From positions 1 to 64,000 of the forward strand of contig NW_026782320.1 of assembly GCF_031769215.1 (NCBI RefSeq): DNA of 64,000 nt. The letters are read 5' to 3'. Below the pieces are notes generated by a model. That model made no database searches, had not been told where the DNA came from, and worked only from the letters and a program-made list of their open reading frames with translations. The translations under genes were made by a program, and so were the position numbers. Each line of letters opens with the position of its first letter. Positions within the stretch are counted from its first letter, which is position 1. The stretch is from Ylistrum balloti. Lineage: Eukaryota. This document shows positions 36,579 through 62,331 of this stretch, piece after piece.

Positions 36579-36915
36579 CATCATTTTCTGGTTCTATCTG
36601 TTGTCATTTCAATATTACAACAGATACAACCAGATCTACACCCTGTCACATCATTGTCTGGTTCTATCTGTTGTCATTTCAATATTACAACAGATACCAC
36701 CAGATCTACACCCTGTCACATCATTGTCTGGTTCTATCTGTTGTCATTTCAATATTACAAGAGACACCACCAGATCTACACTCTCACATCATTGTCTGGT
36801 TCTATCTGTTGTCATTTCAATATTACAACAGATACCACCAGATCTACACTCTCACACATCATTGTCTGGTTTTTATTTGTTTTCATTTCAATATCACAAC
36901 AGATAGAACCAGATC
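36576..36915 (-). repeat. 70-bp hairpin satellite, about 5 units (array 1)
   Basis: Reverse complement of the array at 58070-59649. Confidence 0.92.
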
Positions 36916-37483
36916 AAGACTCTCTCACTGCCTTCACTGGCATTTGATTCCTAATTTGCAGCCCACCATCATAAGAAAGTAGGATGTTCAAGTTTGCCTT
37001 TGGTTCTGGTCCATGGTCAGTCCATTTTGTTACCACTTTTTTTTCCATTTTTTTTGTAGGTTCCCCTCTCCCGTTGTGCATTGTACTGTCTTTCGTTATC
37101 ACTATTTTTCAGATATTACTGAATGAATCTTTTTTCACATTTGATATGTAGGCCCATCTCGGTTCCTAGTTGTCCAATTGTCTTTTTTTGGGCTGATTCA
37201 AGAAGCAACATGGCCGCTGGCCGCCATCTTGGATTTTGACTGGCAAGTTGGTTATCACTATTCTCCAGAAGTACAGTATGAATGTTTTTCAAAATTCACA
37301 AGTAGGTTTCCCTTCCTTCCTAGTTGTGAATTGTACTACAATACTTCGTATGCTTGTAATAACCTTGAATGTCACAATCATTTGAAATACTTCACTGCAC
37401 ATGAATAGTTCTCAAAAATATTATGATACAAAAATAATGCTACTATTGGTTATTCAGATGACGATGACACTTGGTAAAAACGC

Positions 37484-40400
37484 TCACTGATACTGAGCAA
37501 CACATATGGGGCAAATGTAGTCACTCCTCGGAGCATCTTTAAGTCCTACACAAGGCAGATGTGACCATCTCCCACAAACGTTGCATGCAACCCATGTTGC
37601 TCTTTTTGGGGAGGTACAGCCCACCATGTCACATTTGCTCCTTTGAGAAGGAGGCTCTTCAGATGCTGCAAGTAGTTTGCACCACACAAACTCCCTCATG
37701 TTCAGAGAAAGGGAATGTGAGACATCCTTAAGGTCCATATTCTTGGACAGCGCAAGAGCATTCTGTAAAACAAGAAAACTAAACATTACATAAACTATTT
37801 AGATTCATGTCTGTGTTTAATGTTACATATGTTAAAACTTAAGTTCACTGTAAAAGCACTAAATGACATCATTGAACAGTATTAGATTTTTAAATTACAA
37901 CTTCCATGATGGTCAGTTCAATAGTTCTATTATAGTTCAATCCAACCATAAATTTGTAACAAGAGACCCAGAGGACCAGTATCGCTAGGCATAATAACAA
38001 GTTGGCAAACAAGGGATCTAAGTGCTTTTCTTTTCCTTAAACAATGCTTCAAGATGTTCTGGTCACTAGAATAGGTCGTGTAAACAAATTTGACACATCA
38101 ACCTTTAATATGGGTGATAGTTTTTTTATCAACTTTGCTGGGCTTCCTCTATGGAACCTTCCATGTAAATATAACTTTAAATGTTTAAGTTAATCATCAG
38201 AAGTTATTTCAATGATTTAACATATTTCATTCTAATACGGGTCAAGGTCATTTTTCTTACAAACTTCATCCAAGGAACCTTTCAGCCAAATAGCATGTTC
38301 CTGGGCCTTTTGGTTGTTGCAATAATAAGTTGTTTAAATAGAAAACTAGAAAATGTCTGTAAGACATAGATGCCCCCGCCCCCATGTAAATCAATTTTAA
38401 ATTGTACATAAGATAGGGTTTCTTTGGGATCTATTAATACCAACAGTGACCTCGACCTTGGAAACATTGAAATCCTCACTGCCTGAGGTCTCTCAATTAA
38501 TTTTATATTTGTATGAAGTTTGATAATTAAACTAGCTTCTTTGTGTCCAAAAAACCCTATATACCAAATTTTGTATAACTCTGATGATGTTCATGATGTT
38601 TCGAGTTATCTCTCCCTGGTGGGGAATTAGTTTTCTATTTACAAAACAGACATCACTATGCAGTTTGTAATGGCACCAAACCCCTTTATACCAATTTTCC
38701 GCAAAATAGGACATTAATTCAATTTTTGGTGTAAGAGTTATCTCCCCATAGTAGAGGGTTATCTTCCCAAGGTGGACATTTTGTCTTTTTGAAAAACAGA
38801 GGTAACCATTGTCTTCCTTATGCCTTAAAACCCACAAGTACCAAATTATGTAGAAATCAGATGATGTTCATCTTTTTTCAGTTATCTCCCCCTGGTGGCC
38901 ATTTGTAGAATGCCGAGAAACTCAACACTGCATGAGGTCTTTCCATACTTGATGTTTGTATGAAGTTTCATGAAAATTGGTATATACTGTTATATACTGA
39001 TTTGGGAAGCGACGGGACGGGACGGACCGACATGGGCAATGCTATATGCCCCTGGCAATAAATGGCAGGGGCATTAAAATAGTATAACGGCCAGACGGAC
39101 GGTATGGTGCTTGCAATGGCCTAAGCTCACTTGGCCTTTTGGGCTGGATGAGTTAAAAACATAATTTAAAAAATAATCCAGGTTTATGACTAGAGTTTAA
39201 TGCAATTACCGTATCTCATAATTATTTTCTAACAATTATGTCAATATCATAAGGAGTTGCGGTTTTCAGCTCACCTGCACGAAGGGCAAGTGAGCTTATG
39301 CCGTGGTGCAGCGTCCGTCGTCCGGCCGTCCGTCTGGCGTCAACTTTTCTATTCAACCAACTTCTTCTCTATAACTAGAAGGCCCAGGCTTCTGATATTT
39401 CGCTTGTAGCAAGCTGGGATGAAGCCCTACCAAGTTTGTTCAAATGAATGACGTTGACCCACTTTCAAGGTCACAGGGGTCAAATGTGTTAAAATCTTTA
39501 AACAACTTTTTCTCAATAACCAAAAGGCCCAGAGTGCTGATATTGGATCTGTAGCAAGCTGGGATGAAGCCCTACCAAGTTTCTTCAAATGAATGACCTG
39601 GACCCACTTTTAAGGTCACAGGGGTCAAATATGTTAAGATATTTAAACAACTTCTTCTCAATAAACATTATAAGGCCCAAAGTACTGATATTAAGCCTGT
39701 AGCTGGAGTGCAACCAAGTTTGTTGAAATGAATGACCTTGACCCAATTTCAAGGTAACATGAAAGTACAATTTTAACTTTCTGACATGCTTTGGCAGGTG
39801 AGCGATACAGGCCCATTGGGCCTCTTGTTCTGGCTAACAATCCTTACCAGCATCACAAAGGACCCACAAGCATTGCCATCTTTCTGTCTGGAAGACACCA
39901 GATCCCCAGTTTTCCATACTTTATTTCCGAGTTCTCCAGTTTTTTCTGAGCGTATGGTCATGTACCTTCTGTGCAAATGTATAAATTTATTATACTTAGC
40001 TGAGATATCATATAAAAGTTTACTAAACAAATTCAAAATTACTGCATCTGTCAACAAGAGGCCCATGGGCCTTAACGGTCATCTGACTACAAAGACCTAC
40101 ATATGATTTTTTCTTTTCCATTTTAAGAAGTTGTCTAAGATTCTTACAAACTAAAGCACAGCAACATTGAAACAGGAAAGAGGATATTTATTTCAACAAA
40201 ATTGGTAGCCCTTCACATATTTGACCCTGTGACCTTGAAAGTGGGTCTAGGTCATTCATTTGAACAAACTTGGTAGCCCTTCATCCCAGCATGCTACAGG
40301 CCCAATATCAGCACTCTGGGACTTTTGGTTATTGAGAAGAAGTTGTTTAAAGATTTTAACATATTTCACCCCTGTGACCTTGAAAGTGGGTCAAGGTCAT

Positions 40401-43400
40401 TAATTTGAACAAACTTGGTAGGGCTCCATGCCAGCATGCTATGGGCCAAATATCAACACTCTGGGCCTTTTGGTTATTGAGAAGAAGTCGTTTGAATGAA
40501 AAGTTTACGGACGGCTGACGGCGGACGGCGGACGACGACGGACGAAGCATGATGACTATAGGTCATCATGACCCTTCGGGTCAGATGACCTAAAAAGCTT
40601 ATCTAACGTGGTGCTCGAATATTATAATGCTTACTTCCAGTTCTCAATAAGTGCCTGATTGTTGCCACCCATGGAGTCGAGCACAGACACAGCTGCTTGA
40701 GGTACATTGGCTGCAAGGAGGACCCAGTGATTCCCACTCACGTTTGCTGGCAGGAATATCCATTTGTACATTGCAAACTTAACCTGAATTAATCAATTAA
40801 TTTATCAAAACTTATCCATCCATAGCCTCTTTGCTTTGGCTCATAGATATAATAATGTTTTGAACATGTACAAAAAACTTCTGTTAGGATATACTTAAAC
40901 AAATAGCCGTACAATATCAAAAACACATACAGTGTATGCTAAACAAAAAAATAATTACATCTGCCTTTTCTGTACAGGTTCAAACACATTTTCAAAGAGA
41001 GAAACCTGGACATTAGGTAATCAAAGAAATATCTACGGATCCATCACTTGGTAAAGAGTACATGTAACTGTCAAAATTAATTATGACAATATTACAAAAC
41101 AAAGAAGTAGAATTACAAATCATTACTGATATAATTTACACTAAGTAACAACTTGTTTAAATGATTCTCAAATGAAATTATTGGGCCATTTATACTTACA
41201 TCAGAATAGAGCCAATGGTCTATTTTGCCTTGGCCCCATAACACTGCCATGTAGGACGGCATGGCAAAAACATGGTCAATGTTCTTTAGATTCTGTTCCC
41301 TCTGAAGAACTGCCAAATATGCATTGATAACCTAACAACAAAAATAATTGAAGCATCTAAATTGTGTAATTTGAACATAATATCTAATCAATTTGACTTT
41401 TAAAAATTATTTTTAGGCTTGCAGGTATGACTATTTCATTACTGAACAATATTTGGCAATCTGGCAATACTATTTGAATTATGCTTTATCATAATTATCT
41501 TGTTATTACGAATTAACTTTGGGTACCAATGATATTGAATTAAATTGACTTCAATTTCTGACACAGAAACTTCCATTTTGTACATTTTCCAGAGTCATTG
41601 ATCACATAGGATATAAATGATCTAATTTCCATTTGATATTGATTATGAAATTGGTCACAAGTATCCATGTTACCCTGTCAGAGGCTCCCTAAACTGAAAA
41701 TTCTCAGACTACGATTGTTTGAATATAATGTCCTGCCTTTTACCTTATCATTAAGCCACTTGGGATTTTTCAGGGTAAGGAAATCCTTCATGCCCAACAC
41801 TTCTCCACAGACATGGTATCTGCAGTTTTTCTTAAGAGGAGCTGATGTTGACTGCATGATCTCCACGTTGATAAGGTCCTCCAGTGACTTGTCTTAATAC
41901 AATATAAAACTTTTATTTAGCTGAACTGTATCTACTGGGGTATTATACCCAAGTACTTTATATAGATAAAATATTGTACTTGTAGGCATGAAAATGATAT
42001 TTCATTTTATATTTTAAAACTTACTAGCAGATTCGTGATCAATTTATGAAAGTAATAGATTTACAAAGAAACACATTATGATTGAAATAAATTACTTTTA
42101 ACAACCCAAAGGATGTGCTGAAGATTTCAATTTCATTTATATCTGTTGCACATGCTATTTCCACTTTTGATCAGAGAGGACAGCATCTTACCTTTGTGAT
42201 CAACAGTTGAAGGGAGATTAAACCTGACCCTTTTTCCTTTCTTCAGCTTTAGTTCTTCATTTCATGAAAAGTTAAAAAAAAAGTTTGCAAAGTCGTATTC
42301 AAAGTTTATGTATGATATACATGGCATGAATATTGCTATCTCCATTTCTTGTTTTAAACTAAATTAATTTCTAATTGTAAACACTGCTGTAATCGATATT
42401 TCAAAAGTACTCACTTGTACTCCTCTGCTCCAGCAAAACTGATGGCAGAGAATCTGACACAGAAGGCACTGGTTCTGAGAAAAATATATTTTCAATATTA
42501 TGCAAATATTTATTTCTAAAATGTATTTCAATTTGATAATTTTTATTTTAAGTATAAACAAGAGTACCGAGTACGGTACATGATACGCCCACCTGATCTT
42601 TCGAGTCAACATTCACAAAACAAGAATTTGGCAGATGGAGTCATTGACGAGATAAATGTAAATTATTACATGTGAACTGTCTAGGAATTTACAAGTACAA
42701 AAGGCAAGCAGTAGCGATATTATAAGCATGCAGCAAGCAGTATAGTAGTATGTGCATGTACTTGTAGTGATGTAAGGGGAATTTCGCATGTAACAGTAGC
42801 ACTATACAGCTATATTTGTATTCCTTATGCATGGAGATTGAAAGTGCAAGAAATCATAATAATTAGTTGCGGTATATAAATAAATATTGCACAAAACCAT
42901 TATACAATGTATAGTTGAATTTGTGATCCTTTAAAACCGCTACATGCCAATTTTCATCAACATTAGACAATATCTAAATTTCACGCAATCAGAAGCCACC
43001 ACTATCGAAATTTCAACCAATCAGAAGCCTTCATTATGGTCCGTTGAATACAAAACCAATATGGATGAATAGGTGATCCCTTAAAACTCCATACCAATAG
43101 GAATACTTGTTTGACAATGATATCTTAAAGTAATGGCCATTTGACTAATGTATTACTGTATTTAAAGAAGTTCTTTAAGATCAAGGGCCATAACTCCGCA
43201 TCTACTGATCAGATGAACTTTAAAATCAACTCGGCTCGAGACCTTTATCCTTTATATATTATTGGGAAGTTTCATTAATATCCCTTCAGTGGTTCTGGAG
43301 AAAAACTGCGGACAAGATGAATGTTACTGTATTTAAAGGATAAAGGGCCGTAACTCCGCAACTACTGATCAGATGAGTTTTAAAATCGACTCGGCTCTAG

Positions 43401-46400
43401 ACCTTTATCCTTTATATATTATTGGGAAGTTTCATTATTATCCCTTCAGTGGTTCTGGAGAAAAACTGCAGACAAGATAAATGTTGACGGACGAACCGAC
43501 GGACGTCCCGACGGACGGACGGACGGAGTGATGCCAATATACCCCCACCTTTCAGGTGGGCGTATAAAAAGAAATTGTTACTGAAATACCAAGGAATATT
43601 AGCTTATAATATATCAAAATCTTTAAAAATGATTTCTGTTGTAGAAAAATTAACAATATTTATTATAATTAAAAGTATTTGATCCAAAAAATGGAGGTTC
43701 AGGAATTTGTGAAGCAAAATTCAAGCTCTAAATGAAAATTAACTGTCAATTACACATTGCCCTGATAATTTCAGTAAGTACATTTTTGTAGTCATTTCTG
43801 TCATTTTTCATCTTTGTTTTCTTTGCTTGTACATAAAAGGTGAAAAAATACAAAATGAGCAAAATATTGTATCATTCTTAATAACAATGCCCTTTTTAAT
43901 ATTATCATACTAAAAACACCTGATTGTAATTTATCAATGGCTTTCAGTGCTTCTATCATTTCTCGAAATGCGGCAGCTGCTTCCTCAGTTTCTTTTTTTA
44001 GGTCCCTCTTTAGGTCAAATCTGCCTTGCTTGACTAAAAAAAATGGAAAAATAAAACAAGTATTTTTCCTGAATTACATAGATGAAGAAATGTATAGAAC
44101 AACCTTGATTACTTGATTTCTTTCCTTCTGTGTTAAGAGCTGGACAGTTATCCAAACCTTCCACCCTTACAAATATTATTCTCAAAAGTTGAAATCAGTC
44201 ATTTAACTTATATTACCATTGGTTAACTATACTTATTGGTTACATCAATTTTATACCTACCCAATAAACACAGCAGGAGGTAAGACAACTGTAATTTGCT
44301 ATTCATGTTTAACTCTGTTGGAGCCAGGTCTGATATATCCTGAATGAGGCTGTGTTGCTCTTCTTCATCACAGCACTCATCCAACACAGCATGGGCTGTC
44401 CTGCTAGTGTTGTCAAAGGAAAAGCTAGATGTCTCCTTTGCTTTCTGGACCAATTCCATCCAGTCTTCCTTTGACATCTTCTTTGTCATAGCTGTTTGTA
44501 ATCAGGTTATATGGATTTTGTTACCATGATGAAAAAATACATAAAAGTTTTAGTAAAATCAGAGAAGATAGGTAAAAGGGATATAAGTTTTATCTTACTT
44601 CTTAACTTTAAAGTGTTCACTACTATACATATACACACTGTGTGTAAATTATGTAACATAACACTTATGTTTAAACAGTCCTAATTGATTTATACATCAT
44701 TAAGCAGTTTCAACCATTAAGACTTAACAGTGGTTACAATATCATACATTCTTAACTTTGGATTCAGGAGCACAGCTTTACTTCTTTATTTATTTCCTGA
44801 TGATGATTCTTCACTTTAAAACAAATTTAGGGATTTTGCTTTCATTCATTATAAATATTTCTGCATGATTTCCAAGAAACTACTGGTAATTTTAAAACAT
44901 TCATACTCCCTCATATTGCATAAAACATAAATTAGTCTTGATAAAGAAGGAAATATAATAACTGAACAGATAAACAACACATGAAGAACAGTACACAGTT
45001 GGAATGCAATACCTACCTGTTTCAAGGTGTTATCAACAAGGTGAGGGGGGAAAATGTACAATAAATGACATGATTTGGCAAATCACAGTGCCCCCCGCCG
45101 GATAGGGCTGAACTAAATGTTTAGATGAAGGTGAAAATGTAGATCACAGTGACCTGCATTGGGTACAATGATGTATGTGACACACTACTTCATAAATATT
45201 AACCCATACAGATAGAAAAGTGGAAAGATGGATGGACATTGCTTATAGCAATTCCAATCCTCTACACCTGTTCCTGCTAAAAAGGTTACAGTTGGTTTGG
45301 TACTCTTACTAACCTTGAATTCTTTCCAAAACTTCAAACCTGGAAGTGGAGTACTTGGGAGATTCTACAAAACAACATAAAAATATTCCTTTTAATTGAA
45401 ACCACACGATACAAATTCAGTGGATACCAATGTAGGTGTACCCTGTGTTAATCAATTTCAGAAATAAATGTATTTATTTTGGAGCACTCAATTTTTTGTG
45501 CATTGACAAAATGCAACCGATAACCTCAAATATAAAGTACTGCTTTAGAAGGACACTGAAATAGGGATTAGTGCAATCGATCTTAGCCCTATGCTATTTG
45601 AGCGAAATGCACTAAAACAAATTCACTGAGAGAAAAATTTCATGTATTGTAAATGCCATAAATGTATAAAAATATGTTTGGTATTTAACAAATATAATGT
45701 TCTGTATACGACATGGGCTAAGTGTATGTCATGTTTATAACAATATTACCATTGCCAGTTTCCTGTTTTAGTAATTGTGTAAAACAACCACTACTATACA
45801 AGAAAGTTTGCAATAACGGTCATCTTTTTCTTCATCATAGATTGAAGTGAGCTAGAATCTGAACTCATGCAAAAGCATTTACGGTATTTGTAAGCACACA
45901 CAAAGAATGATATGATCAGTCTAGAGACCTCACTTGAGAACAATTACGGAACAAATTGTATCAACAATCGAGCCTCTATTGACAGCATGCAATAACCATA
46001 CATACTTGAAGTACTTTTTTGTACATTTTCTGAAGATCCTCTTACATCACTGATAAATGTCTTTCCTTAAAAAAAATGAAAGAACAGTTTGTATCTGGTT
46101 CTTTTCACAGGTCAAAAATTTGATTTTAAGGAATTGAAACTTGAACATCTGGATTCAAGAATATATATATATACATGTATAATGTACTTCATACATACAC
46201 TTTTATTTCATGGATTGTTTTTGTTTTTGTTTGTTTTTTTGCAACCATATGCTGATTTACCACAGAATCATCTCAATATCATCCTCTCAAAGACAAGCCT
46301 ACTGAAGCATTACATGTCCCAAACCTACCTAGAAAGCTTGGTGGTGTCTGGTATATATGTTTTAAAAAAATATCTAGGAGAAATTCTAAAAATAGTAACA

Positions 46401-49400
46401 ATGGCCTTGACATAGACCTAACATTTTTGAAACTTGTCTGAGATATAGTGGTCTTCAGTTATAGTGTAATGTTTTATAAAAACCCCAAAGGAATAAAGCT
46501 ATTAAGAGTGTGCATGCCGACAAAGATTTCTGAACATAGTAATGGTGACCTTTACATGACATTCCTCCAACTTCAACTTGTCCGAGATATAACAGTCCTT
46601 TAATGTTGAGGGAATTTTCATCAAAATCACAACTTGAAGAATGAGGCCGCTTATTCTCTAAAAATTGTAATGGTGACCTTGACCTTGGCCCAACATCCCT
46701 GCAACTCGACCTTGTGCAAGATGTTATGCTAATTCCTAGTTATTGTATCGAGGTTTTATCAGTTCCCATTTGGTATGAAGCCACTATAGATATAGTACCA
46801 ACAAAGATTTTCTAAAAAAATACAAATAGTAATATGGTGACTTTGATCTTGACTTGACAGTCCTGAAGCTCAGACTCCCCCAAGATACTTTAATCCTTTG
46901 CAAGTACCAGATATTAGATTAAAATATATGTAAGCAGACAACAATTTGTGACGAGAGATTATATACATACTGGTCTTTTTCCTTTTGTGTTTTTTTTCCA
47001 AAGGCTTAGCTTCATCTTTGATGGATTCCTTTACTGAATGAAACAGAGCACCAGAATCTGCAATATAAGCTGATGTTCAAATGTTGTAATATACTAAAAA
47101 CTATTTTATAACTAAATTGATAAGTTAATAAATAAATAATATTCATGACTCATTACCATTTCTCTTAATTAAAATTATCTTTGATGCCTTCTGTGACATC
47201 AGAATAATTCAACAATATATAAATACACTAAAAATTTACTTCGATTTATTTAAATTGTTTTAAAATGGTTACAGTTAATTTAACGACTTAATGTCTGTTA
47301 CATCATCATGATTAGTACTGAACTGGCATTAGGAAATTAAAACACTGAGAATCAACCAAGAACTTTAACCTTATTCAATCAGCTTAAATAAATACATCAT
47401 CTAAATGAGTTCTACTTAAACACCTTTTTGTAAAAGAGAGCATATGTAAGTAACTTCCATTTTTCATATTTGAGATCTTTGTCATTCTCAAGAAAGTTTG
47501 GAGTGTTGTGTTGACACTAACTAGACACTGAATGATAAATTTCAGTCACTTAATCTACATAAAGTTGTCTCATTGAGGATTTTCTAAAATGTCAATAACT
47601 CACCATCATATACTGTCTGATATTTGTCTGAAAATGGACAAAATAAAAAATCAACCAACAACTAATACCTGCTGGCTAAGTACCAGATTTCATTCCTGCT
47701 GTTAAACTGTCTAAATACTGTTATATTATCACTGAAATCTAAATTTCAAAGACTGTCAAGTAACAAAACAAATCACCCTATTGCTCAATGAATTCAACCT
47801 GGCCTGTAAAACACCAACCTATGTAATACATGCCAAATAGTGACTTTTATGGAATTTTAATATGATTGATCTGAATTGCAACAAGAGACCCAAAGGTGTT
47901 AATGGTCATTTGGAAACATTGACACTGTACATTTTTTTTTAGAAACTGTCTAATTGAAACAAGAAGGCCAATCGGCCTAAAGATTTTGCAGGTTAAGTCC
48001 TGTTGTGGAACTTTACAACCAACTTCAAACTGCACTATGACATGAAATACTCCATGGATGATTATCATCCCAGCATGCATCATGCCAGATTTCATCATTT
48101 TTCATCCTGGTGAATTTGAAGTAGTTCAAGGTCATTCATATGAAAAAATTTAACTTCGTTTAATATATAGCCCTTCGTCCAGAAATACAGGCCTAATATT
48201 AATACTCTAACCTTTCAGTTCTTGAGAAGAAGTTGTTTGAAGGGGAAAAGATTCTGTTTGGTGCATAAAGAATGGCACACAATGACAGCTGATGCATATC
48301 ATCTTAAACTTTATGGTTAGATGACCTAAAAAGAAATTTATTTAGACTACTAGTCTCAGTTATGGTAACAAATCATCAGTGCATATCTTCTTGCAAATGA
48401 AAGTACAGGTATTGCCTGAAATCAGTGTTCATTATACTAACGTTTGGTAGTACGTCTTCTCTTGGCCCTAGTTGGTAACTGTTTCAAAGACTCTTTGTTG
48501 TTGGGAAATTTTCTCTTTTTAGTAAAGATCTTGGCTGGTGCAGGCTGCTCCAAAAGCAAAGTTCCACTAGCTGGACATTTCTGTCTCAGTTGATCAGCTA
48601 TTGCTGACAGCTGCTCCCTCACTTCCTCCATCACCTCCATAGAATCTGCGATGTAGGAAAGGTTACGGATATACTGCAGCAGCTCCCTGACCCGCTTGGC
48701 AGACTCCCCTAGTGAAGGCCCATGAGGATGCTTCTGGTCTTTGACTTCTATGTCCTCTCTAGCCTGGCATGGAGCTGGTGTGGTATTTCCTTGGGATTCC
48801 TGAGGGGTATCTTGGAACTCTGTCAGGTTTACACAATCCTCATCAATGATGAAATGAGGGTTGTTTATGTAGAATTCTGGCAAGGAGTTCCAAGTAATAT
48901 CACCTGCAAAATGGCACATCAAAGCACAGAAATGTTTGCAAGGAAGATGTGTTTTCATAAATTCCCTGCACTCACAAGATGGCATAATGGATTCTCCACC
49001 CAAACTGACTCTGTAGACACGTGACTGATGGCTAGCTGACTGCACTAGAAACTCTGTATCTGTCACCGAGGTGATCATGCTGGCAGTGATGTCTGCACAC
49101 TTTTGTGTGGCATCCCTGATGTGCTGTACAAAGTACCTGGGTCGGTGGTGGAGCTCTTTTGGAATGGAGACAGATGGCTCCCTCCAACCAGCTGACATGG
49201 TAACATTGCTCTGAAGATATCTGGAAAAGGTAAAATATTTACAGGTAAATTAATTGAAACCGTAGCAATGGTAGGAGCTAAGATTGCGGAATGTAAAATG
49301 CATGCTGGTATTGATGATATTGAGAGAAAAGTTTATCCTAATTATATCCTAATTCTTTTATGTGTAATATACACTGCAAAATGTTCAATATTATATCATA

Positions 49401-52400: not shown

Positions 52401-55400
52401 TAATAGTCTATTACAACAAACACGTAGTGTCCTGACGGTAAAGGTCCTAGCAGGTCTATCGAGAGATCCTGCCATGGTCCTGATGGCATAGGGGTCGGCG
52501 ATATGGGCTCGGGCCGTGGCAATGAACTTACCACTTGACAGCCATGACATGACTTGACATAAGCCTCTACGTCCTTATCTAAAGTTGGCCACCACACTTT
52601 AGTTCGTAGCTGTTGCTTTGTAGCGACAATACCAAGGTGTCCCTGGTGAGCTAATTTAATACATTCTGTTCGTAACACTGCTGGAATAACTAATCGTGTT
52701 CCACGTAACAGCAGGTACCCTATCTGGGACAGTTCATCTTTTACCGCATAATACTTTACACATTCCTTTTCCCACTGGTCTGCAGATAAAGCCTTTCTCA
52801 CCAGTGTTAGCTCGGGATCAGACTTGGATTTTTCCTCCACCTCACGAGTTGTCATTGCTTTTGGGGTGCTTCTCTCTGCCACAGCTCTGACATAATGCTC
52901 TGTTTCTGTTTGTAGATCTGTTACACCACTGTGTTTCCTTTTCACAAGTCGCGACAATGCGTCAGCAATGTTCTGTTTACCAGGTTGATACCTAATACGA
53001 AAATTGTAGGGCATCAGTCTCATAACCCACCGTTCAATACGCGCGTTAGGTTTGGATTTTGGACCATACAGTATTTCCAATGGTTTGTGGTCTGTCACCA
53101 GCTCAAAATCAATGCCATACAGGTATATGTGGAACTTTCCACATGCCCAAACCACTGCTAAGGCCTCCTTTTCTGTGGTTGAGTACCTTCTTTCAACATC
53201 AGTCAGTGTACGACTAGCATAGCTGATAACTTTGGTCTCGCCTTCAGATTCCTGAACGAGTACAGCCCCTAAACCTACATCACTCGCGTCAGTCACAAGT
53301 TGTGTTTTTGTTGCGTCTAATCGGAAATGTCCCAATGTATCTGCGTTCACAAGGCTTTCCTTTAATGCTCGAAAACAATCCTCCTGTTCCTGTCCCCACA
53401 AAAACTTTACACTGGACTTGGTAAGTCGTCTCAAGGGTTCAGACAATGTAGCCAAGTTTGGAATATAGCGAGCACTAAAGTTGACAATGCCTAAAAAGCT
53501 TCTCACCTCAGATGCACTTTGTGGCCTCTGAGCCTCAATAATGGCCTTTGAACGATCGGATGTCGGCGCGATTCCATTTTTTGACAATACATGACCCATA
53601 AATGTGATCTTGTCCATTCCCCACTCGCATTTCTCCTTGTTCAGAGTTAAGTTCTTTTCCTGCAGTCTACACAATGCTTTCTCTAGCCTTTGATCATGTT
53701 CATGTTTATCCCTGCCATGAACCACAATATCATCGGATATATTCTGAACCCCTTCACAATCATGAAATGTCTGTGATATGATTTGTTGATACTTCTCTGG
53801 TGCTGAACTGATACCAAACATCAGCCGCTTATACCTGTATAATCCTTGATGCGTCACAAATGTAGTTATCTCCCTTGATGAATCTTCTAATTCTATCTGG
53901 TGATATCCATACTTCATATCTAATTTGCTGAACACTGTACTCCCATTCATATTGTACAGTATCTCGTCCACAGTGGGTATTGGGTGTCTCTCACGGACTA
54001 TAGCTTGATTAGCCTGTCTCATATCCACACATATCCTGATATCGCCATTAGGTTTTGGGACAACTATTACCGGGCTAACCCACGGCGTTGGGTCATTCAC
54101 CTTCTCGATAATGTCCTGATCCTCAAGTTCATCAAGTTTAGCACCGACTTTCTCTCGTAGACTGTAAGGAATCCTATACATAGGTTGTGCCACCGGTTTT
54201 ACAGATGGATCAATATGAAGCTTCAATTTGAAGTCATTCAGCTTCCCAATTCCTCCAAAACATGACTTGTACTTATCCAATATATCATCATGGACTGAGT
54301 AGATTTTCAGCACTCCGAGATCTACTGCCGTAGCCCTCCCTAATAAAGCCGAACCTGTGCCATCAAGTACATAAAAGGCAGCCTCAATTTCATCATCACT
54401 TCCGTCAACAGACACCGTAGTAATAAATTTGCCAAGTAACGATAAAGGTTTATCTGCTCCATATGAACACAGCCGTTTGTCAGTTTTCTCTGAACGACAC
54501 ACAATCTTTCTTTTCTTTAAGTCCTCCCATGTAGGCTTGTCAATGATATTGACTGTCGCTCCACTATCCACAACCATATCAACTTTGTGACCACCAACCA
54601 TGAACGAAAGTCTGTCTGCATCTGTGTGTTGTACACTAAATGCATACTCTGCCTCTGACTCTACACAGTTCACTTTACCTTTGACCTTTGACAATGTTGA
54701 CCTCTCTGCCTTTAGGCAACGTGGTTCCTTTGTTTTACAGCATGCACGAAAATGCCCCATCTTACCACACTTATTGCACTTTTTGTTTTTCGCTGGACAG
54801 CCTGAATCTTTCGCGAAATGACCTTCACGTCCACATCGAAAACATAAAGCCTTTGTGCTACTACTTGTTGACCGTTTTGTGTCCTTTTGTTTCACAAAGT
54901 TTATCTGATTGACTGAGCTTAGAGGAGACTCCATTTTCTTAGCCTGGACATCTGCCATTTCCATTGTAGCCGCGATTGTGCGTAATTGATCAAGTGTCAA
55001 TTCCTTCCCCTTTTCCAGACATTTGGTTCTAAGTTTATGAGATTTACATTTTTCTATTATTTGATCCCTTATTTGTTCCTCAATGTTCCCAAATTCACAA
55101 AGAACTGCTTGTCTTCTGAGTCTGGTGATGAATTGTTCGATAGACTCGTCTTCCTGACACATTGACCGAAATACATACCGTTCGTATGGCACGTTTATTT
55201 TTGTTTCAAAATGTTTACTCAGTGTGGCTACCGCTACAGCATACTCATCACCTCCCTCCGCCTCTGTTAGCGTGAAATAGATGTCTTGAACTGGTACACC
55301 TGCACAGTGTAGTAATAACGCTTTCAACTGTTTCTTGTCTGTTACACCCTTGCCAGTGGCAAATAAATCGAAACTACGAAGCCATCGCTTCCATTCCTGC

Positions 55401-58400
55401 TGTAAATGACCTGGGTCACCATGTGCGTTGAACGGCTCAATACCATTCAGGTCGATCGAAGACATTTTCACAAATGACAGTTCGTATTTCTTACATACAC
55501 CAGTTCTTGATACATTTACTAACGTATTCGCAATATCCTCGTCACCAGATTGTCGTGTCGAATTGAATCAGAGCCCGAATTGAATCATAACACACAAAAC
55601 TGGTCTCGTTCAATGGCCGCCTGTTTTAATAATACTGCCCGGATGTTTCACAAGAACGATAACTCCACACATAAGACAATCAGAGTTATTTCCCATTACT
55701 CTACATCTAAACACTACACATCGTGACTTACTTTCGATATGAATCCACGAAAAAATCGTCTACAAGGAGGGTCATCAGACTGGACACAGTCTTCATGGGT
55801 AGTGATGCAAGGTATTCATACTTAAACACCTTGTTCTGTGCTTCAACACCATTGTTGGTGTTTACAACCAGAGTGAGACCATCTCCTCTATAGGCCCACA
55901 CCCACATCTTTAAAACAGAGGAAATTAGAATAAACTAAAAATATTTCAAAACTGGCATGTATCTACTCATGTTGAGGATTATTAATCAAAGATCAGCTAA
56001 AAATCATGTGATCTGTGGAATTTGTCATGATAATCAAGAAATGTCTCAAGCAGAAGGCTTCTACTTGGATGTATGAAAGTATGGAAAGACAGGTAAATCA
56101 AAAACAGCATCTGGAGTTACTGTTATCGCTATAATTCACAGTCTTAGGCTTCTTATGATATACAGTAATCATAATAGTCAAACTCTTTTCGGAGCAGATC
56201 AAGTTACAAACTCCTTAACTTGTCCTTCCGTACCAAATACTCGTGGCAACTTCATTTCGCGTTTTCAAAGTCTAATTGGGCCAATTTAATTTTGTGACCG
56301 TCCAAGTTAAAATCACTCAAGCGTATTGGCTTCGGTAAATACCTGTCATATTGAAACTATTTCACAGCAATTAATTTTTGCAAATTTTCATTCAACGGGA
56401 AATTAGCGAAAATAAATCGCACACGAAAATGTTTGTTTACAGTATATCATTGGTCTACACTGCCTAGCTACAGAGGTAATGAATAGTATAAGTATCCCTT
56501 ATTTACTACAATGTATACAAAATTATATTGCTGTGCTTCGATCTTTTATTAATTAATATTACCTTGTGTTTATCATTGGCTAGCCATTGCCCATTGATAT
56601 ATTGACGAAGCTTTGGCTGACTCTTCCATATTTCACTGTCATGAAGGTTCTTCAAATTCTTGTTGAAATCAGCTTCAGTAAATGACTCTGCCACTGACTA
56701 AAACATAAAATTTTCTCTCAAATCAACATTTGTTAATAAACCCTAAGCTCTGTCCTAAATTAGATATGTGTACATGATATTTACATGTTGAATTAATTGC
56801 TGATCTATTCAGGCATAAACTTACATTTAATAACTCTGAAGTTTGATCTTGACTTGTCACATCATGCTTTGAGGCAACCAACCATCTGTGCCAGGCTTGT
56901 TTTCTATGAAAGTCGCATATGAAGATGTTTGAACCTGTTAACATATTAAAGATAATAATGTTACATTTCAGCTTTAAATTTATTTCTGTTATTTAAGACT
57001 ACATGCAACAGGATCTTCCTGCAGCTTCTTTATTATTCCAGTTGCCACTTACAATGTCTATGAAAGCAATCTAAGTCTTACAGGACATGTTTTTTTGTTA
57101 AGAAAAAAACAACTCTTTTTTATTATATTCCTGCCTGACATACAGGCACAATATGGAAAAAGTTAGGTCACATGAATGTTCACACCTAAGATAAACATAA
57201 AACTGACCTGGGAAAACATTCTGAATGGCATTTGCTTCTACCTCAGAGGAATCTATCATGAAACCTTTACAGGTCCAGTTTGGATTGTTATCCTTGATGA
57301 CTTGTAAAGCTTCTGCTACTGAGATGGAGTCTTCTCTTTCTGTGATGAAAGCACCAACAACACAGAAGCCATCATTTGTCTGAACACACAGAAAAAACAA
57401 TGGCAATGCATACTTTGTGGTTCTGTATGTGGCATCCAGATACACAAGCTCCTTTCCATACCGTGAAAGCAATCTTCTCTGCCAGGAAGACTGGTAAATG
57501 ACTAGGAAAGACTGATCTTCATTTACAACAAAGCAGCCACCATCCTCTTCAAAGTCATCTTCAATGACAGGACGCTTCACAAATGATGACTTTCGGAAAG
57601 TCCACATGTCATCTGGACGCTCCTCTTGCCACACACGTATTTTCTCTTCCAGGTCTTCCTGGTCAATCAGGCTGTGCAATGTTTTGCGCCTCTGCCGATA
57701 TATAATTTTTCTGAGGTCATCTTTGCTTGGATAAAATCGCCGATTTGTGACTCTGGGCAACTCTCGGTCTTTGAAGAGATCTTTTATGTAGATCTTAAGG
57801 TGTCGATGCATTTCTTTTGGATTATAGACCCCTTCATCTACAAGCTTACAAATTTTCTTCAGAACTCTTTCATCAATTGGGGATTTTAAATCAGCAGCCT
57901 ACAAGAGGACAAAGTACATCACATGACATAACAATAACTATACTAGCAAACTACCAAAGTCAGGAAGGGCCCCGCTGGCTGCTTTTGTCTCACATAATCA
58001 AAAATCGTTATAAAATGTACTAACGGAAAGGTTTTGTCACAAGGAACAGTGATATCAAGTATGAAAGCCAGATAGAACCAGCGAATGATGTGAGAGAGTG
58101 TATATCTGGTAGTACCTGTTGTAATATTGAAATGACAACAGATAGAACCGGACAATGATGTAAGATAGTGTAGATCTGGTGGTATCTGTTGTAATATTGA
58201 AATGACAACAGATAGAACCAGACAATGATGTGAGAGTGTAGATCTGGTGGTATCTCTTGTAATATTGAAATGACAACAGATAGAACCAGACAATGATGTG
58301 AGAGAGTGAAGATCTGGTTGTATCTGTTGTAATATTGAAATGACAACAGATAGAACCAGACAATGATGTGAGAGAGTGTAGATCTGGTGGTATCTGTTGT

Positions 58401-61400
58401 AATATTAAAATGACAACAGATAGAACCAGACAATGATGTGAGAGAGTGTAGATCTGGTGGTATCTGTTGTAATATTGAAATGACAACAGATAGAACCAGA
58501 CAATGATGTGTGAGAGTGAAGATATGGTGGTATCTGTTGTAATATTGAAATGACAACAGATAGAACCAGATAAAGGTGTGAGAGAGTGTAGATATGGTGG
58601 TATCTGTTGTAATATTGAAATGACAACAGATAGAACCAGACAAAGGTGTGTGAGAGTGTAGATATGGTGGTATCTGTTGTAATATTGAAATGACAACAGA
58701 TAGAACCAGACAATGATGTGAGAGAGTGTAGATCTGGTGGTATCTGTTGTAATATTGAAATGACAACAGATAGAACCAGACAATGATGTGAGAGAGTGTA
58801 GATCTGGTGGTATCTGTTGTAATATTAAAATGACAACAGATAGAACCAGACAATGATGTGAGATATTGTAGATCTGGTGGTATCTGTTGTAATATTAAAA
58901 TGACAACAGATAGAACCAGACAATGATGTGAGAGAGTGAAGATCTGGTTGTATCTGTTGTAATATTGAAATGACAACAGATAGAACCAGACAATGATGTG
59001 AGAGAGTGTAGATCTGGTGGTATCTGTTGTAATATTAAAATGACAACAGATAGAACCAGACAATGATGTGAGAGATTGTAGATCTGGTGGTATCTGTTGT
59101 AATATTAAAATGACAACAGATAGAACCAGACAATGATGTGAGAGAGTGTAGATCTGGTTGTATCTGTTGTAATATTAAAATGACAACAGATAGAACCAGA
59201 CAATGATGTGTGAGAGTGAAGATCTGGTTGTATCTGTTGTAATATTAAAATGACAACAGATAGAACCAGACAATGATGTGAGAGTGAAGATCTGGTGGTA
59301 TCTCTTGTAATATTGAAATGACAACAGATAGAACCAGACAATGATGTGTGAGAGTGAAGATCTGGTGGTATCTATTGTAATATTAAAATGACAACAGATA
59401 GAACCAGACAATGATGTGAGAGGGTGTGTAGATATGGTTGTATCTGTTGTAATATTAAAATGACAACAGATAGAACCAGACAATGATGTGAGAGAGTGTA
59501 GATCTGGTGGTATCTGTTGTAATATTGAAATGACAACAGATAGAACCAGACAATTATGTGAGAGAATGTAGATCTGGTTGTATCTGTTGTAATATTGAAA
59601 TGACAACAGATAGAACCAGACAATGATGGGAGAGAGTACAGTAGATCTGTTTTAATATTTAGATGATAACTTATAGAATATTTTTTGTTTAATCATTGAT
59701 ATATTGCATTTTATATAGAAATGTACATATGATTGAATTATCCAAAGAGAATATTCTATTTCTTTTGTAATTGCATTTTCAAAAATGATTAATATAAATT
59801 ACAAGTATGATTGTTAGCTTTTTACAAGAATATATAACACATATATATGGCCTATACTTGATACTTACCATTCCCAGGATGTGATTTTTGTGTTCCTTTG
59901 GGAGATCTATATATATGACTTTGCGTTGTTCAACCTGCTCATAGCAGGATGAATGAAGGTCATTTCTCAGTTTTGTTGACATACCTTCACGCCAGTACCT
60001 TGTATCCTGTGGAACCTAGCAAAATTGAATGGATCAAAATGTATACTCAACATCAAAAAGTAGATATTATTCAATGACATTATCTATTTTTGACAAAATG
60101 ACTGGGGATCATGTCAGTGCTACAAATATGTATTGGTATTACTAGATATTAGTATGTAAGATGTATTAGGTTAGACAGAAATATTGGAATTTAGGAAAAA
60201 TGTTGGCAATGTAAAAAAAATCACAAATGAATTGCATTGATACCCGGTAATTGAAATATGTATCCTTACCACATTTTTTTTTAAATTAAAGTTTTGATGG
60301 TGATTAATTTTTGATTTTCTTCACTTTTACTGACAACTACCAGAACTGTTAAAGACAATTTGATACCTTGTACTGGTCGAAATGAATGACTTCCCTCATT
60401 ACTATAGCCGCAGGACATCCTTTTTTTTGTACCTGTCAGCCTCTTCCTGCTTGACAGCAAGCTATAGCCATGTTCTCCCACCTGGCTTTGATTGGTGTCC
60501 TAAAAAAGTATGTCATCAATGAGGTTATACTCTGACCCTTAAATAAGTCTAACCTCCACATGATTGTTCTTACATTACTTTATTTAATTGTTTGTTAAAA
60601 AATGTATAATATAAACTAATCCAACATAATGAAATTGATATTGATTTGCTTGTAATAGAAAATGTCTTACTTTTGTTTTTTTGGTCCTGTGCTGACGGCC
60701 TTGATGACATTCCATCAGTTTTAGGCCCACTATCATAAAAGGTGCACCATTTGATGGAATGTCACACTGGTGGGCAACCTTTCCTTCATTTTTGAATCGA
60801 ACAAAATGGTCTTCAACTCCATTAAGTTCTGCAGACAGTAAATATACATTACAAAATACATATATATACACCAAACTGTTACTTCACTATTGTTTAACTG
60901 CATGATTTAACTTCCTTAAGCAGAAGTTCTCTGATGAGTTGGTACAAATACATATTAGTAGATAAATATTGTACTTACTAAATGTGTATGTGAAACTTCC
61001 CCTTGATCAAGACAACAAATTTTATATATGTATTAAAAGATATCTTTAAACGCTACCTCACATTAAAATTCTCATGGTGACTACAAACCTTAAATACACT
61101 TCATAACAGAAACTTCATGTATACAAACCCTGATCCTGTCAGAAAATTTGTTTGTTGATCGAATCACATAACAGTGCACATGTAGACTAAGGACTACGGT
61201 ACCTAAAAGTACTGGGAATGTATTCCTGATGTTACATGTTTGTCTTGAAATGGTGTACACTTCTGTCCTCAGAATATCAGAAATTTATCACAGTCCTCAA
61301 TATTCCTATCATTTCTACTTGAATGACTTACCAAGACTAAAATGTCCAAAATTCTTCGTACATCTTGTCACAGAGTACGTAGTGGATGTCTGGTAGCAGA

Positions 61401-61509
61401 ATTCACGAATAATGTCATTGCAGTCCTCAGGATCAGAAACCTGGCCATGGTAGGGGTCAGTAACATGATCAGCATCAAAATACTGTACCCACGGCAATTG
61501 TTCCGACAT
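37484..61509 (-). CDS. Multi-exon MULE-family transposase-like protein with CaRF-like N-terminus, DDE core, SWIM, Ulp1/C48 protease and PHD finger (about 1330 aa or more)
   Basis: Hand-built GT-AG exons: 61509-61332, 60828-60671, 60499-60367, 60015-59869, 57898-57208, 56934-56825, 56697-56563, 55907-55732, 49220-48442, 47057-46971, 46065-46006, 45858-45800, 45364-45314, (unresolved gap), 44491-44261, 44033-43920, 42254-42192, 41892-41744, 41331-41200, 40783-40635, 39968-39848, 37762-37484. Motifs LDATY, MIDSS, CDFH, NNGVE, CEC..LPCKH, NHW/LDS/QKDGNACG, PHD C4HC3. One +1 frameshift in an A8 run at 60421-60428. Confidence 0.8.
37958..39155 (+). mobile_element. Nested non-autonomous Helentron/HINE-like repeats in the last intron (inner copy about 38343-39078)
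   Basis: AACAAGAG and AAACTAGA starts, GACG/GGAC tracts and terminal hairpins (GCCCCTG...CAGGGGC). Confidence 0.6.
39263..39829 (-). mobile_element. HINE-like element with internal tandem repeats of about 124 bp
   Basis: Minus strand starts AACAAGAGGCCC; subterminal GCTCACCTG inverted pair; GACG tract near the 3' end. Confidence 0.7.
40053..40596 (+). mobile_element. HINE-like element, same family as 39263-39829, opposite orientation
   Basis: AACAAGAGGCCCATGGGCC start; GGTCATCTGAC/GTCAGATGACC inverted pair; GACGG tract; TAAAAA end. Confidence 0.72.
42556..43570 (+). mobile_element. HINE-like element with two internal repeats of about 167 bp
   Basis: AACAAGAG start, duplicated core 43160-43490, (GACG)n tract, terminal hairpin and ATAAAAA. 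Confidence 0.68.
47880..48331 (+). mobile_element. Degenerate HINE-like repeat(s)
   Basis: AACAAGAG/AACAAGAAG starts and GATGACCTAAAA end as in the 40053 copy. Confidence 0.45.
51009..55718 (-). mobile_element. Gypsy-5: intact full-length Ty3/Gypsy (Mag-like) with 168-bp LTRs and TSD CATCG
   Basis: LTRs 51009-51176 and 55551-55718 differ at 1 position; TSD at 51004-51008 and 55719-55723; PBS TGGTGACGAGGAT (tRNA-Ser-like); PPT from 51177. Confidence 0.97.
51485..55471 (-). CDS. Gypsy-5 Gag-Pol polyprotein (1328 aa), uninterrupted
   Basis: CFRCGREGH, VDSGA, ISDD, TDAS/TDHKPL, H2C2, SDNGPQF, NGEVERQN in one frame. Confidence 0.97.
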   Translation of the reverse strand: MKMSSIDLNGIEPFNAHGDPGHLQQEWKRWLRSFDLFATGKGVTDKKQLKALLLHCAGVPVQDIYFTLTEAEGGDEYAVAVATLSKHFETKINVPYERYVFRSMCQEDESIEQFITRLRRQAVLCEFGNIEEQIRDQIIEKCKSHKLRTKCLEKGKELTLDQLRTIAATMEMADVQAKKMESPLSSVNQINFVKQKDTKRSTSSSTKALCFRCGREGHFAKDSGCPAKNKKCNKCGKMGHFRACCKTKEPRCLKAERSTLSKVKGKVNCVESEAEYAFSVQHTDADRLSFMVGGHKVDMVVDSGATVNIIDKPTWEDLKKRKIVCRSEKTDKRLCSYGADKPLSLLGKFITTVSVDGSDDEIEAAFYVLDGTGSALLGRATAVDLGVLKIYSVHDDILDKYKSCFGGIGKLNDFKLKLHIDPSVKPVAQPMYRIPYSLREKVGAKLDELEDQDIIEKVNDPTPWVSPVIVVPKPNGDIRICVDMRQANQAIVRERHPIPTVDEILYNMNGSTVFSKLDMKYGYHQIELEDSSREITTFVTHQGLYRYKRLMFGISSAPEKYQQIISQTFHDCEGVQNISDDIVVHGRDKHEHDQRLEKALCRLQEKNLTLNKEKCEWGMDKITFMGHVLSKNGIAPTSDRSKAIIEAQRPQSASEVRSFLGIVNFSARYIPNLATLSEPLRRLTKSSVKFLWGQEQEDCFRALKESLVNADTLGHFRLDATKTQLVTDASDVGLGAVLVQESEGETKVISYASRTLTDVERRYSTTEKEALAVVWACGKFHIYLYGIDFELVTDHKPLEILYGPKSKPNARIERWVMRLMPYNFRIRYQPGKQNIADALSRLVKRKHSGVTDLQTETEHYVRAVAERSTPKAMTTREVEEKSKSDPELTLVRKALSADQWEKECVKYYAVKDELSQIGYLLLRGTRLVIPAVLRTECIKLAHQGHLGIVATKQQLRTKVWWPTLDKDVEAYVKSCHGCQVVSSLPRPEPISPTPMPSGPWQDLSIDLLGPLPSGHYVFVVIDYYSRYYEVDITKDISSERMIDALENMFARYGLPVSITSDNGPQFVSALFEEFLCDNGIHHRRVTPLHPAANGEVERQNRSIMKRIRIAHAESRDWKKDLRTYLLAYRGTPHAVTGVSPAELMFGCKLRNKVPQLDVHRNETIEEGVRDRDWFAKVKNKLYIDEKRGAKESDLVEGDQVLVKQSRNNKLSSPFNPTPFKLQRKVGNQCTLVSPEGVEYKRNSTHVKKYVQSPESLVESKSTTATSESESLTMSDNNVSKQDKADDDVMHRSTNDGMESNLSHQVEIPRSRPVREKTKPKRFDDFEMT
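58070..59649 (+). repeat. 70-bp hairpin satellite, about 22 units (array 2), in an intron of the MULE-like gene
   Basis: Unit GATCTGGTGGTATCTGTTGTAATATTGAAATGACAACAGATAGAACCAGACAATGATGTGAGAGAGTGTA; 18-bp inverted arms (2 mismatches) around a 12-nt loop. Confidence 0.97.
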
Positions 61510-62059: not shown

Positions 62060-62300
62060 TATAAACCGAAAGTAAATCACTGCGCATGTAAGTTGATCAA
62101 ACCGAAAGTACAACACTACGCATGTGCATTGATTACACTTCCTGTTCTGGTGCTATCTGTTGTAATTTTCCCCGTCCCGTTGCAAGGAGGTCTCTATAGG
62201 CCTTTCCGATAACTATGTTATCTCCCCCTGTTTTTCTTACTTTTGCCGCGAGGCGGCGCTAGAATTAGTTTACATGTTCTACTTCCGGGGGCTATGGCTT
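62060..62300. promoter_or_regulatory. Putative bidirectional promoter region between the MULE-like and THAP genes
   Basis: AAACCGAAAGTA...CACT.CGCATGT duplicated at 62063 and 62099; ETS-like ACTTCCGG at 62281; genes diverge on either side. Confidence 0.35.
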
Positions 62301-62331
62301 CAGTGACAACGAGTGATAAAAAAACGTAACG

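Follow-up and report, generated by a model that had tools for sequence, protein, structure and literature searches.

A Mutator-like DNA transposon in the scallop Ylistrum balloti with a probable single gene for a transposase–Ulp1–PHD fusion protein

Mutator transposons with Ulp1 domains have been described from hydra, lancelet, and plants (Bao, Kapitonov and Jurka 2010, PMC2836005), and Fig. 1e of the same paper aligns the Ulp1 and PHD domains of Ginger1 and Mutator transposases; the MuDR-type elements with Ulp1 of Hydra magnipapillata and Branchiostoma floridae are cited there from Repbase Reports of 2008/2009, and we refer to them as that paper presents them. In plants, Ulp1-carrying VANC (KIU) proteins of VANDAL elements belong to a sequence-specific anti-silencing system in which the role of Ulp1 itself is unknown (PMC13317346); the KI-MULE/VANDAL elements with Ulp1 (Kaonashi/KIU) were reported by Hoen 2006, van Leeuwen 2007, and Sasaki 2022, according to the account given in that review. 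Rehavkus elements, reported only from arthropods and annelids and used as an outgroup to the Mutator-like elements (MULEs) in the study that describes them, combine 9-bp duplications with a PHD finger and a minisatellite that precedes the 3' repeat (Dupeyron et al. 2019, PMC6446971). Here we analyze the first 64,000 nucleotides, free of N, of contig NW_026782320.1 of Ylistrum balloti (NCBI RefSeq assembly GCF_031769215.1, forward strand; hereafter the window), in which positions 33930-62178 probably cover the greater part of a single copy of a Mutator-like DNA transposon, recently active and low in copy number, with a single 15-exon gene for a fused transposase–Ulp1–PHD protein.

Like the MuDR-type elements of Hydra and Branchiostoma, with which we compared it by description, the window element belongs to the animal Mutator elements whose transposase has a C-terminal Ulp1 domain, and it differs from them in being molluscan, in its 15 exons spread over 24 kb, and in its 70-bp arrays, one of which is intronic. 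Our searches also recovered Hydra and Branchiostoma proteins that combine the same ALS2CR8–MULE–SWIM core with a PHD or C48 domain. Ginger1 transposases have a C-terminal Ulp1 domain as well, and Ginger1-9_HM has the same tail module of Ulp1 and PHD (Bao et al. 2010, PMC2836005); the Ginger1 core, however, is a Gypsy-integrase-like DDE (aspartate, aspartate, glutamate) domain and not the MULE core of the window element. The plant KI-MULE/VANDAL elements share membership of the Mutator superfamily and the Ulp1 domain, but their Ulp1 is carried by a separate accessory gene (VANC/KIU) and viewed as a captured host fragment, and the elements often lack terminal inverted repeats, whereas in the window element a fusion of Ulp1 with the transposase, with a PHD finger behind it, is most likely. 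The likeness to Rehavkus, by description only, comprises the PHD finger, the minisatellite before the 3' repeat, and the 9-bp duplication; the Rehavkus description (PMC6446971) mentions no Ulp1, SWIM, or ALS2CR8 domain, all three of which are present here. Finally, vertebrate ZSWIM1, ZSWIM3, and CaRF (ALS2CR8), the namesakes of the Pfam families matched by the RNase H-like core and the ALS2CR8 domain of the window element, are single-copy host genes without terminal repeats or an Ulp1–PHD tail, unlike the mobile window locus. Both the domain architecture and the anti-silencing idea have precedent, and an initial annotation of this DNA overstated their novelty, given that Ulp1 in the Mutator transposases of hydra and lancelet and an alignment of Ulp1 and PHD were already published in 2010 (PMC2836005). 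What is added here is a delimited molluscan family, an intron-rich structure with motif arrays, and near-identical copies that include a natural derivative without Ulp1.

The element is bounded by terminal inverted repeats of 80 bp, the outer ~48 bp of which are nearly identical between left and right, including the left repeats of other copies. The same sequence is located on four contigs besides the window contig (C463), designated C46, C1225, C522, and C140, and the terminal repeat has only 7 matches in the whole genome (648 Mb, 1372 contigs). The features that define the ends are as follows.

62099-62178, unstranded: right terminal inverted repeat, on the 5' side of the gene, terminating in ...CCCCGTCCC
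62179-62187, unstranded: 9-bp target-site duplication GTTGCAAGG, an identical 9-mer directly abutting the left repeat in C522 and C140
C522:314430-314518, C140:10445-10533, C1225:10306-10386, and C46:8578-8655: inverted matches to the right repeat
33930-36582, minus strand: hAT-type segment of 2.65 kb with zf-BED and hAT dimerisation domains, split over two reading frames

Homology between copies stops at window position 62178 on the right and, on the other contigs, at an inverted copy of the 80-base repeat on the left, with unrelated flanks beyond. In the window, the right repeat is followed by GTTGCAAGG; in C522 and C140 this 9-mer stands ahead of the left repeat, and the two occurrences give a perfect 9-bp duplication of one insertion. 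At 98-99.9% identity, C522 and C140 have the element interior and the nested hAT segment in common with the window. The match to C522 breaks off at window position 33930, so that the window contig lacks the left terminal repeat. The DDE domain with its catalytic motifs, the long terminal inverted repeats, and the 9-bp target-site duplication (superfamily range 8-11) place the element in the Mutator/MULE superfamily. Its size is ~22.8 kb in a sister copy without nested insertions and more than 28 kb in the window copy. Copies that are ~99.9% identical occupy at least three loci, and the window copy and that of C1225, whose right end lies beyond its contig end, differ by substitutions at only 5 of 3421 exon bases and 18 of 14838 intron bases; given these few differences, the copies must be very young.

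Contig C999 was considered as an empty site and rejected, as it matches the right flank only from 62195 on, contains no copy of the 9-mer, and has no match to the left flank of C522. The right flank (62195-64000) is repeated at C999:53619-55397 with 98% identity, beginning 16 bp past the element end, and the element may sit within another repeat.

Two tandem arrays within the element are built from a motif of its terminal repeats.

57951-59788, unstranded: 70-bp tandem array of ~22 units, in the intron between exons 3b and 4
36570-36942, unstranded: left 70-bp array, just past the 3' end of the gene and opposite in orientation to the intronic array

Every unit of the intronic array contains two inverted copies of the terminal-repeat motif TATCTGTTGTNAT. 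This 13-mer occurs 49 times in the window, as compared with 0.01 occurrences expected by chance, and within the window it is confined to the right terminal repeat, the intronic array, and the left array, the last of which is 1.4-1.7 kb long in other copies. The array motifs are candidate transposase-binding sites. Together, the terminal inverted repeats, the 9-bp target-site duplication, the subterminal motif arrays, and the near-identical copies at differently flanked loci uphold the proposal in the initial annotation that the locus is a giant MULE.

The gene lies on the minus strand from 61509 to 37484. Exon boundaries were taken from tblastn of homologues, from the Argopecten RefSeq protein XP_069108840, and from the sequence itself; database searches were done exon by exon, and exons were joined locally to follow phase and stop codons only. 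Fifteen exons are supported.

61332-61509, minus strand: exon 1, with ATG at 61509 and a phase-1 donor; 64% amino acid identity to residues 1-62 of Argopecten XP_069108840
60671-60828, minus strand: exon 2, start of the ALS2CR8/CaRF-type domain (GAPF..MECHQG), ALS2CR8 profile positions 9-46
60367-60499, minus strand: exon 3, with KKGCPAAI; frame broken at an A-run
59869-60015, minus strand: exon 3b, of 147 nt and in phase 0 at both ends, its acceptor good and its donor GTAAGT; central part of ALS2CR8
57208-57898, minus strand: exon 4, end of ALS2CR8 and N-terminal half of the MULE RNase H-like core, including the first two catalytic aspartates (LDATY, MIDSSE)
56825-56934, minus strand: exon 5, CDFHRKQAW (CxxH) motif
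56563-56697, minus strand: exon 6, defined by homologue alignment and a conserved island
55732-55907, minus strand: exon 7, TNNGVEAQN (catalytic glutamate), with a phase-2 GTAAGT donor
48442-49220, minus strand: exon 8, SWIM zinc finger and basic tail, with donor AAAC/GTTAGT
44261-44491, minus strand: exon 9, acidic linker, with acceptor and donor both phase 1 and a conserved ATG at its start
41744-41892, minus strand: exon 10, start of the Ulp1 domain (KWLNDK)
41200-41331, minus strand: exon 11, Ulp1 (VINAYL...)
40635-40783, minus strand: exon 12, catalytic His and Asp of Ulp1 (GNHW ... LDS)
39848-39968, minus strand: exon 13, oxyanion Gln and catalytic Cys of Ulp1 (RQKDGNACG)
37484-37762, minus strand: exon 14, end of Ulp1, PHD finger, and stop codon; 51% identity to an Antedon protein over 97 amino acids

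All definable junctions are GT-AG with compatible phases, in agreement with the consistent phase originally described, and the A-run in exon 3 is the only interruption of the joined reading frame, with 138 codons before the break and 1050 codons plus a stop after it; substituting the A10 found in the sister copies gives a coding sequence of 3570 nt (1189 codons and a stop). Of the 21 exons originally counted, the 15 listed are supported; six more were not recovered here but may exist. The frame needs no additional exon, and the linker length agrees with that of echinoderm homologues. The closest public proteins are RefSeq models of Argopecten irradians, with 82% identity over the largest exon; XP_069108840 matches exons 1-6 without exon 3b, which is missing in this RefSeq model. 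The exons are conserved islands in Argopecten, with nonsynonymous divergence (dN) of 0.04-0.32, saturated synonymous divergence (dS), and dN/dS of 0.02-0.12 outside exon 9 (0.09 for exon 1, which is a conserved island in locus L048, 0.06 for exon 4, and 0.02 for exon 7). The two Argopecten loci compared stop before the Ulp1 and PHD exons, so that this comparison between scallops covers the upstream exons only.

The proposed CaRF-like region, MULE DDE core, SWIM, Ulp1, and PHD domains are all recovered as Pfam matches in collinear order. ALS2CR8 is matched in three collinear pieces, profile positions 9-46 (60883-60587), 89-143 (60015-59782), and 165-226 (57898-57101). The exon-4 piece exceeds the cut-off of 28.9 with 36.8 bits, and those in exons 2 and 3b are below threshold and collinear; for exon 3b (E 0.015), the match of homologue P0028 is weak but collinear. 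The region 57898-57101, containing exon 4, also matches PF10551 (MULE) with 36.4-36.7 bits (cut-off 27.6) and PF21056 (ZSWIM1-3_RNaseH-like) with 53 bits, and a search with the exon-4 region returned 2151 relatives at E<=0.001. LDATY, MIDSSE, CDFHRKQAW, and TNNGVEAQN align with the corresponding motifs of Antedon, Apostichopus, and Argopecten proteins, and the two catalytic aspartates are invariant or nearly so in the alignment of relatives (A1). A SWIM match lies in 49249-48440, with its CxC...CxH pattern aligned with homologues.

Exon 12 alone (40792-40634) matches Peptidase_C48 with 30.6 bits (cut-off 20.7, E 3.7e-7), and the collinear homologue P0071 covers profile positions 1-205 (E 5e-12). 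The catalytic His (GNHW) and Asp (LDS) are 17 residues apart and the Gln precedes the Cys by 6 in RQKDGNAC, spacings that we take to equal those of yeast Ulp1 (H514, D531, Q574, C580). All four residues are conserved in echinoderm homologues. The Ulp1 part of the window element contains KWLNDKVINAY and GNHW, and its two tryptophans are presumably those of the SENP tunnel, in which the Gly-Gly tail is clamped. A search of solved-structure sequences with the His–Asp exon gave weak matches to ChlaDub2 only. The PHD finger (PF00628, 37798-37487) scores 26.2 bits against a cut-off of 24 (E 8e-6), and exon 14 contains the Cys4-His-Cys3 ligands C-x4-C...C-x2-C-x4-H-x2-C...C-x2-C, with cysteines and histidine aligned to those of homologues. 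Its best solved relatives are KDM5B PHD3 (E 2.6e-5), ING1/3/4/5, TAF3, and BPTF, all of which we take to be readers of histone H3 trimethylated at lysine 4 (H3K4me3); two tryptophans aligned with KDM5 PHD3 are presumably its aromatic cage positions. The retention of the D, D, CxxH, and E residues of the transposase and of the Ulp1 H-D-C triad with its Gln, as initially proposed, is thus seen throughout in alignment with homologues.

The window copy is disabled or compromised, by a frameshift in exon 3, by a retrotransposon beside the exon-7 donor, and by a left end that is missing or rearranged.

60421-60428, minus strand: A8 homopolymer in exon 3 that shifts the frame; the sister copies C46 and C1225 have A10 and are in frame, with TKKKGCPAA as in Argopecten
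51009-55718, minus strand: sense-oriented Ty3/gypsy retrotransposon of 4.7 kb, inserted into intron 7 and starting 13 nt after the exon-7 donor

The initial annotation correctly placed a frame break at the A-run and described it as one extra A; the run is in fact two A short relative to C46 and C1225. Nor is it the sole clear lesion, in view of the Ty3/gypsy insertion and the absent left terminal repeat. The retrotransposon is apparently intact: a single base distinguishes its 168-bp long terminal repeats, its 5-bp duplication is CATCG, and a single open gag-pol frame of 1328 amino acids comprises zinc knuckle, protease, reverse transcriptase, RNase H, and integrase. Both C46 and C1225 lack this insertion, which is therefore very recent. 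The hAT segment is also missing in C46 and C1225 and is 99.9% identical to that of C522, where it lies between the left array and the site of the left terminal repeat; no clear termini or duplication could be defined for it. The divergence of the window and C522 exactly at the left edge of this segment (33930) suggests a rearrangement or an assembly join through the hAT repeat. Among the sister copies, that of C1225 has lost 1 nt directly behind the ATG, and in C46 a deletion of 8.6 kb (window 39456-48053) removes the linker and all four Ulp1 exons.

The fusion of transposase, Ulp1, and PHD is real in the family and likely in the window element. Transposase, C48, and PHD are found as one protein in Antedon, in the sea cucumber Apostichopus, and in Branchiostoma lanceolatum, and in Branchiostoma belcheri residues 510-1374, from SWIM to PHD, are encoded by one uninterrupted exon. 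The protein XP_071952734 of the crinoid Antedon aligns collinearly with exons 4-8 and 10-14; the N-terminal exons have no counterpart in it and its linker is unmatched, the linker being ~99 amino acids long in the window vs 85-87 in the echinoderm proteins. At the junction of exons 8 and 9, the donor (AAAC/GTAAGG in Argopecten), the acceptor, and phase 1 are all conserved in Argopecten. Exon 9 has 52% amino acid identity to Argopecten L049:19566-19811, with the same splice phases and with 0.26 nonsynonymous and 0.75 synonymous differences per site, a marked excess of the latter. More widely, proteins of Branchiostoma, Apostichopus, Hydra, and dendrobatid frogs have C48 and/or PHD along with this transposase core. 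Word-based protein searches found only Apostichopus with the Antedon Ulp1–PHD region and a single Argopecten protein with the SWIM exon. In a quick FastTree of the exon-4 region, the supports of which were not read, bearers of Ulp1 or PHD are scattered among non-bearers, many of the latter being truncated models.

The single fused protein proposed at the outset is accordingly the likely product, on the strength of the conserved splice site and phase, the low nonsynonymous divergence of the linker, and the fused homologues, and a separate-gene arrangement has to be weighed beside it. In such a two-gene element, which we regard as rather improbable, the transposase of exons 1-8 would end at the TAG at 48439-48437 and a linker–Ulp1–PHD protein of ~350 amino acids would start at the ATG at 44489. 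Separate genes are conceivable because the GTTAGT donor of exon 8 is weak and overlaps this in-frame stop codon, and because exon 9 of both scallops opens with the conserved ATG, closely preceded by in-frame stops; owing to the overlap, intron retention would yield a transposase-only protein of ~837 amino acids, and both forms could coexist via alternative splicing. The Argopecten RefSeq models end at or before the SWIM exon, Ulp1 is its own gene in plant KI-MULE/VANDAL elements (PMC13317346), and 28 of 34 long relatives have neither C48 nor PHD. These points are opposed by the conservation of the two phase-1 splice sites across two scallop genera, by the continuity from SWIM through PHD within one exon of B. 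belcheri, by the fused models of Antedon, Apostichopus, and B. lanceolatum, and by a linker length that fits the echinoderm proteins. Our reading of positions 33930-62178 as most of a recently active transposon with one fused gene is likely, but several observations count against it besides the weak donor and the exon-9 ATG: the splice from exon 8 to exon 9 is one that we infer; only 5-6 of the 34 long relatives have C48 or PHD; the 9-bp duplication is read from two ends located on different contigs; the C46 copy is without a target duplication, and both its termini are short of the final 3 bp; and every copy seen bears some lesion, none being shown fully intact, although single-base indels may be assembly errors.

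The initial annotation also entertained a domesticated gene. A host gene of the ZSWIM1/3 or CaRF type, transposase-like in appearance only, would account for the strong purifying selection against Argopecten, for the conserved intron positions, and for Pfam families whose core is named for host ZSWIM1-3 and whose N-terminal domain is named for CaRF. We nonetheless consider it very improbable, as it does not fit an element with terminal inverted repeats, a 9-bp duplication, and motif arrays that is present at three or more loci with unrelated flanks and ~0.1% difference, one copy of which (C46) is a deletion derivative and which has several loci in Argopecten too. The copies could also be haplotigs, or segmental or assembly duplications, instead of products of transposition. 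The assembly is in 1372 contigs, C46 and C1225 are short contigs (~33 kb), and some contigs are allelic or redundant, because C522 and C140 have a flank in common and C463 and C522 share the nested hAT. Such an origin for the copies as a whole is, however, exceedingly improbable in our view, given that there is no relationship between the left flanks of C46, C1225, and C522/C140 or between the right flanks of C463 and C46, that homology always stops within a few bases of the terminal repeats, and that a 9-bp duplication is present. We therefore retain the young Mutator-like transposon as the preferred reading.

Based on its domains, we posit the following sequence of events for the protein of this transposon. 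The N-terminal domain would bind TATCTGTTGTNAT in the terminal repeats and in the subterminal 70-bp arrays, and the DDE core would cut and paste the element, the outcome of which is seen in the 9-bp duplication. The PHD finger would dock the protein on H3K4me3-type chromatin, where silencing, chromatin, or repair proteins in the vicinity might be stripped by Ulp1 of SUMO or of a different Gly-Gly ubiquitin-like modifier; removal of the modifier would favor expression or integration. SUMO is required for transposon silencing in animals, and we hypothesize by inference that the tail has an anti-silencing role. A broader possibility, which we advance tentatively and hold to be more doubtful than probable, is that the Ulp1–PHD tail is an ancient module of one animal Mutator clade (mollusc, echinoderm, and cephalochordate, with PHD also in hydra and frogs) that tethers a deSUMOylase to H3K4me3 chromatin, either for anti-silencing, by taking SUMO off the silencing machinery at the promoter of the element itself, or for integration into active promoters. 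If so, a family with a 0.1% difference between copies and ~45 intronic motif copies could be an active animal test system. Why unrelated transposon superfamilies carry Ulp1 or OTU proteases has been a standing question since about 2006-2010, and the scallop family offers a delimited element, with terminal inverted repeats, target-site duplication, and candidate binding arrays, together with near-identical copies for testing the role of the tail. For tests of tail function, C46 is a useful natural derivative in which only the linker and Ulp1 exons are removed.

The element also plainly places the CaRF and ZSWIM1/3 domains in a mobile Mutator lineage. The N-terminal DNA-binding domain of this clade is the Pfam ALS2CR8 (CaRF) domain, and some Hydra relatives (among P0158/P0163) are named 'calcium-responsive transcription factor-like' by NCBI, which suggests that the DNA-binding domain of CaRF derives from the transposase lineage to which the window element belongs. 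Our literature search found no paper stating an origin of the CaRF domain from a transposase lineage.

A second, more distant MULE family is present in the genome at six or more loci, with 35-37% identity over the RNase H-like core.

Contigs C1350, C1121, C1177, C1285, C1103, and C689: loci L004-L009 of the second MULE family

Within the window element, two arms of a 145-bp repeat family (39346-39623 and 40225-40502), 278 nt long and 88% complementary, bracket exon 13 with its catalytic Cys; relatives of the 145-bp repeats are present in Argopecten loci, and the inverted arrangement could favor skipping or circularisation of exon 13. Immediately downstream of the stop codon, a ~156-bp repeat (37092-37331) matches tandem arrays on dozens of contigs of the same genome (~73-75% identity) and also arrays in Argopecten locus L049.

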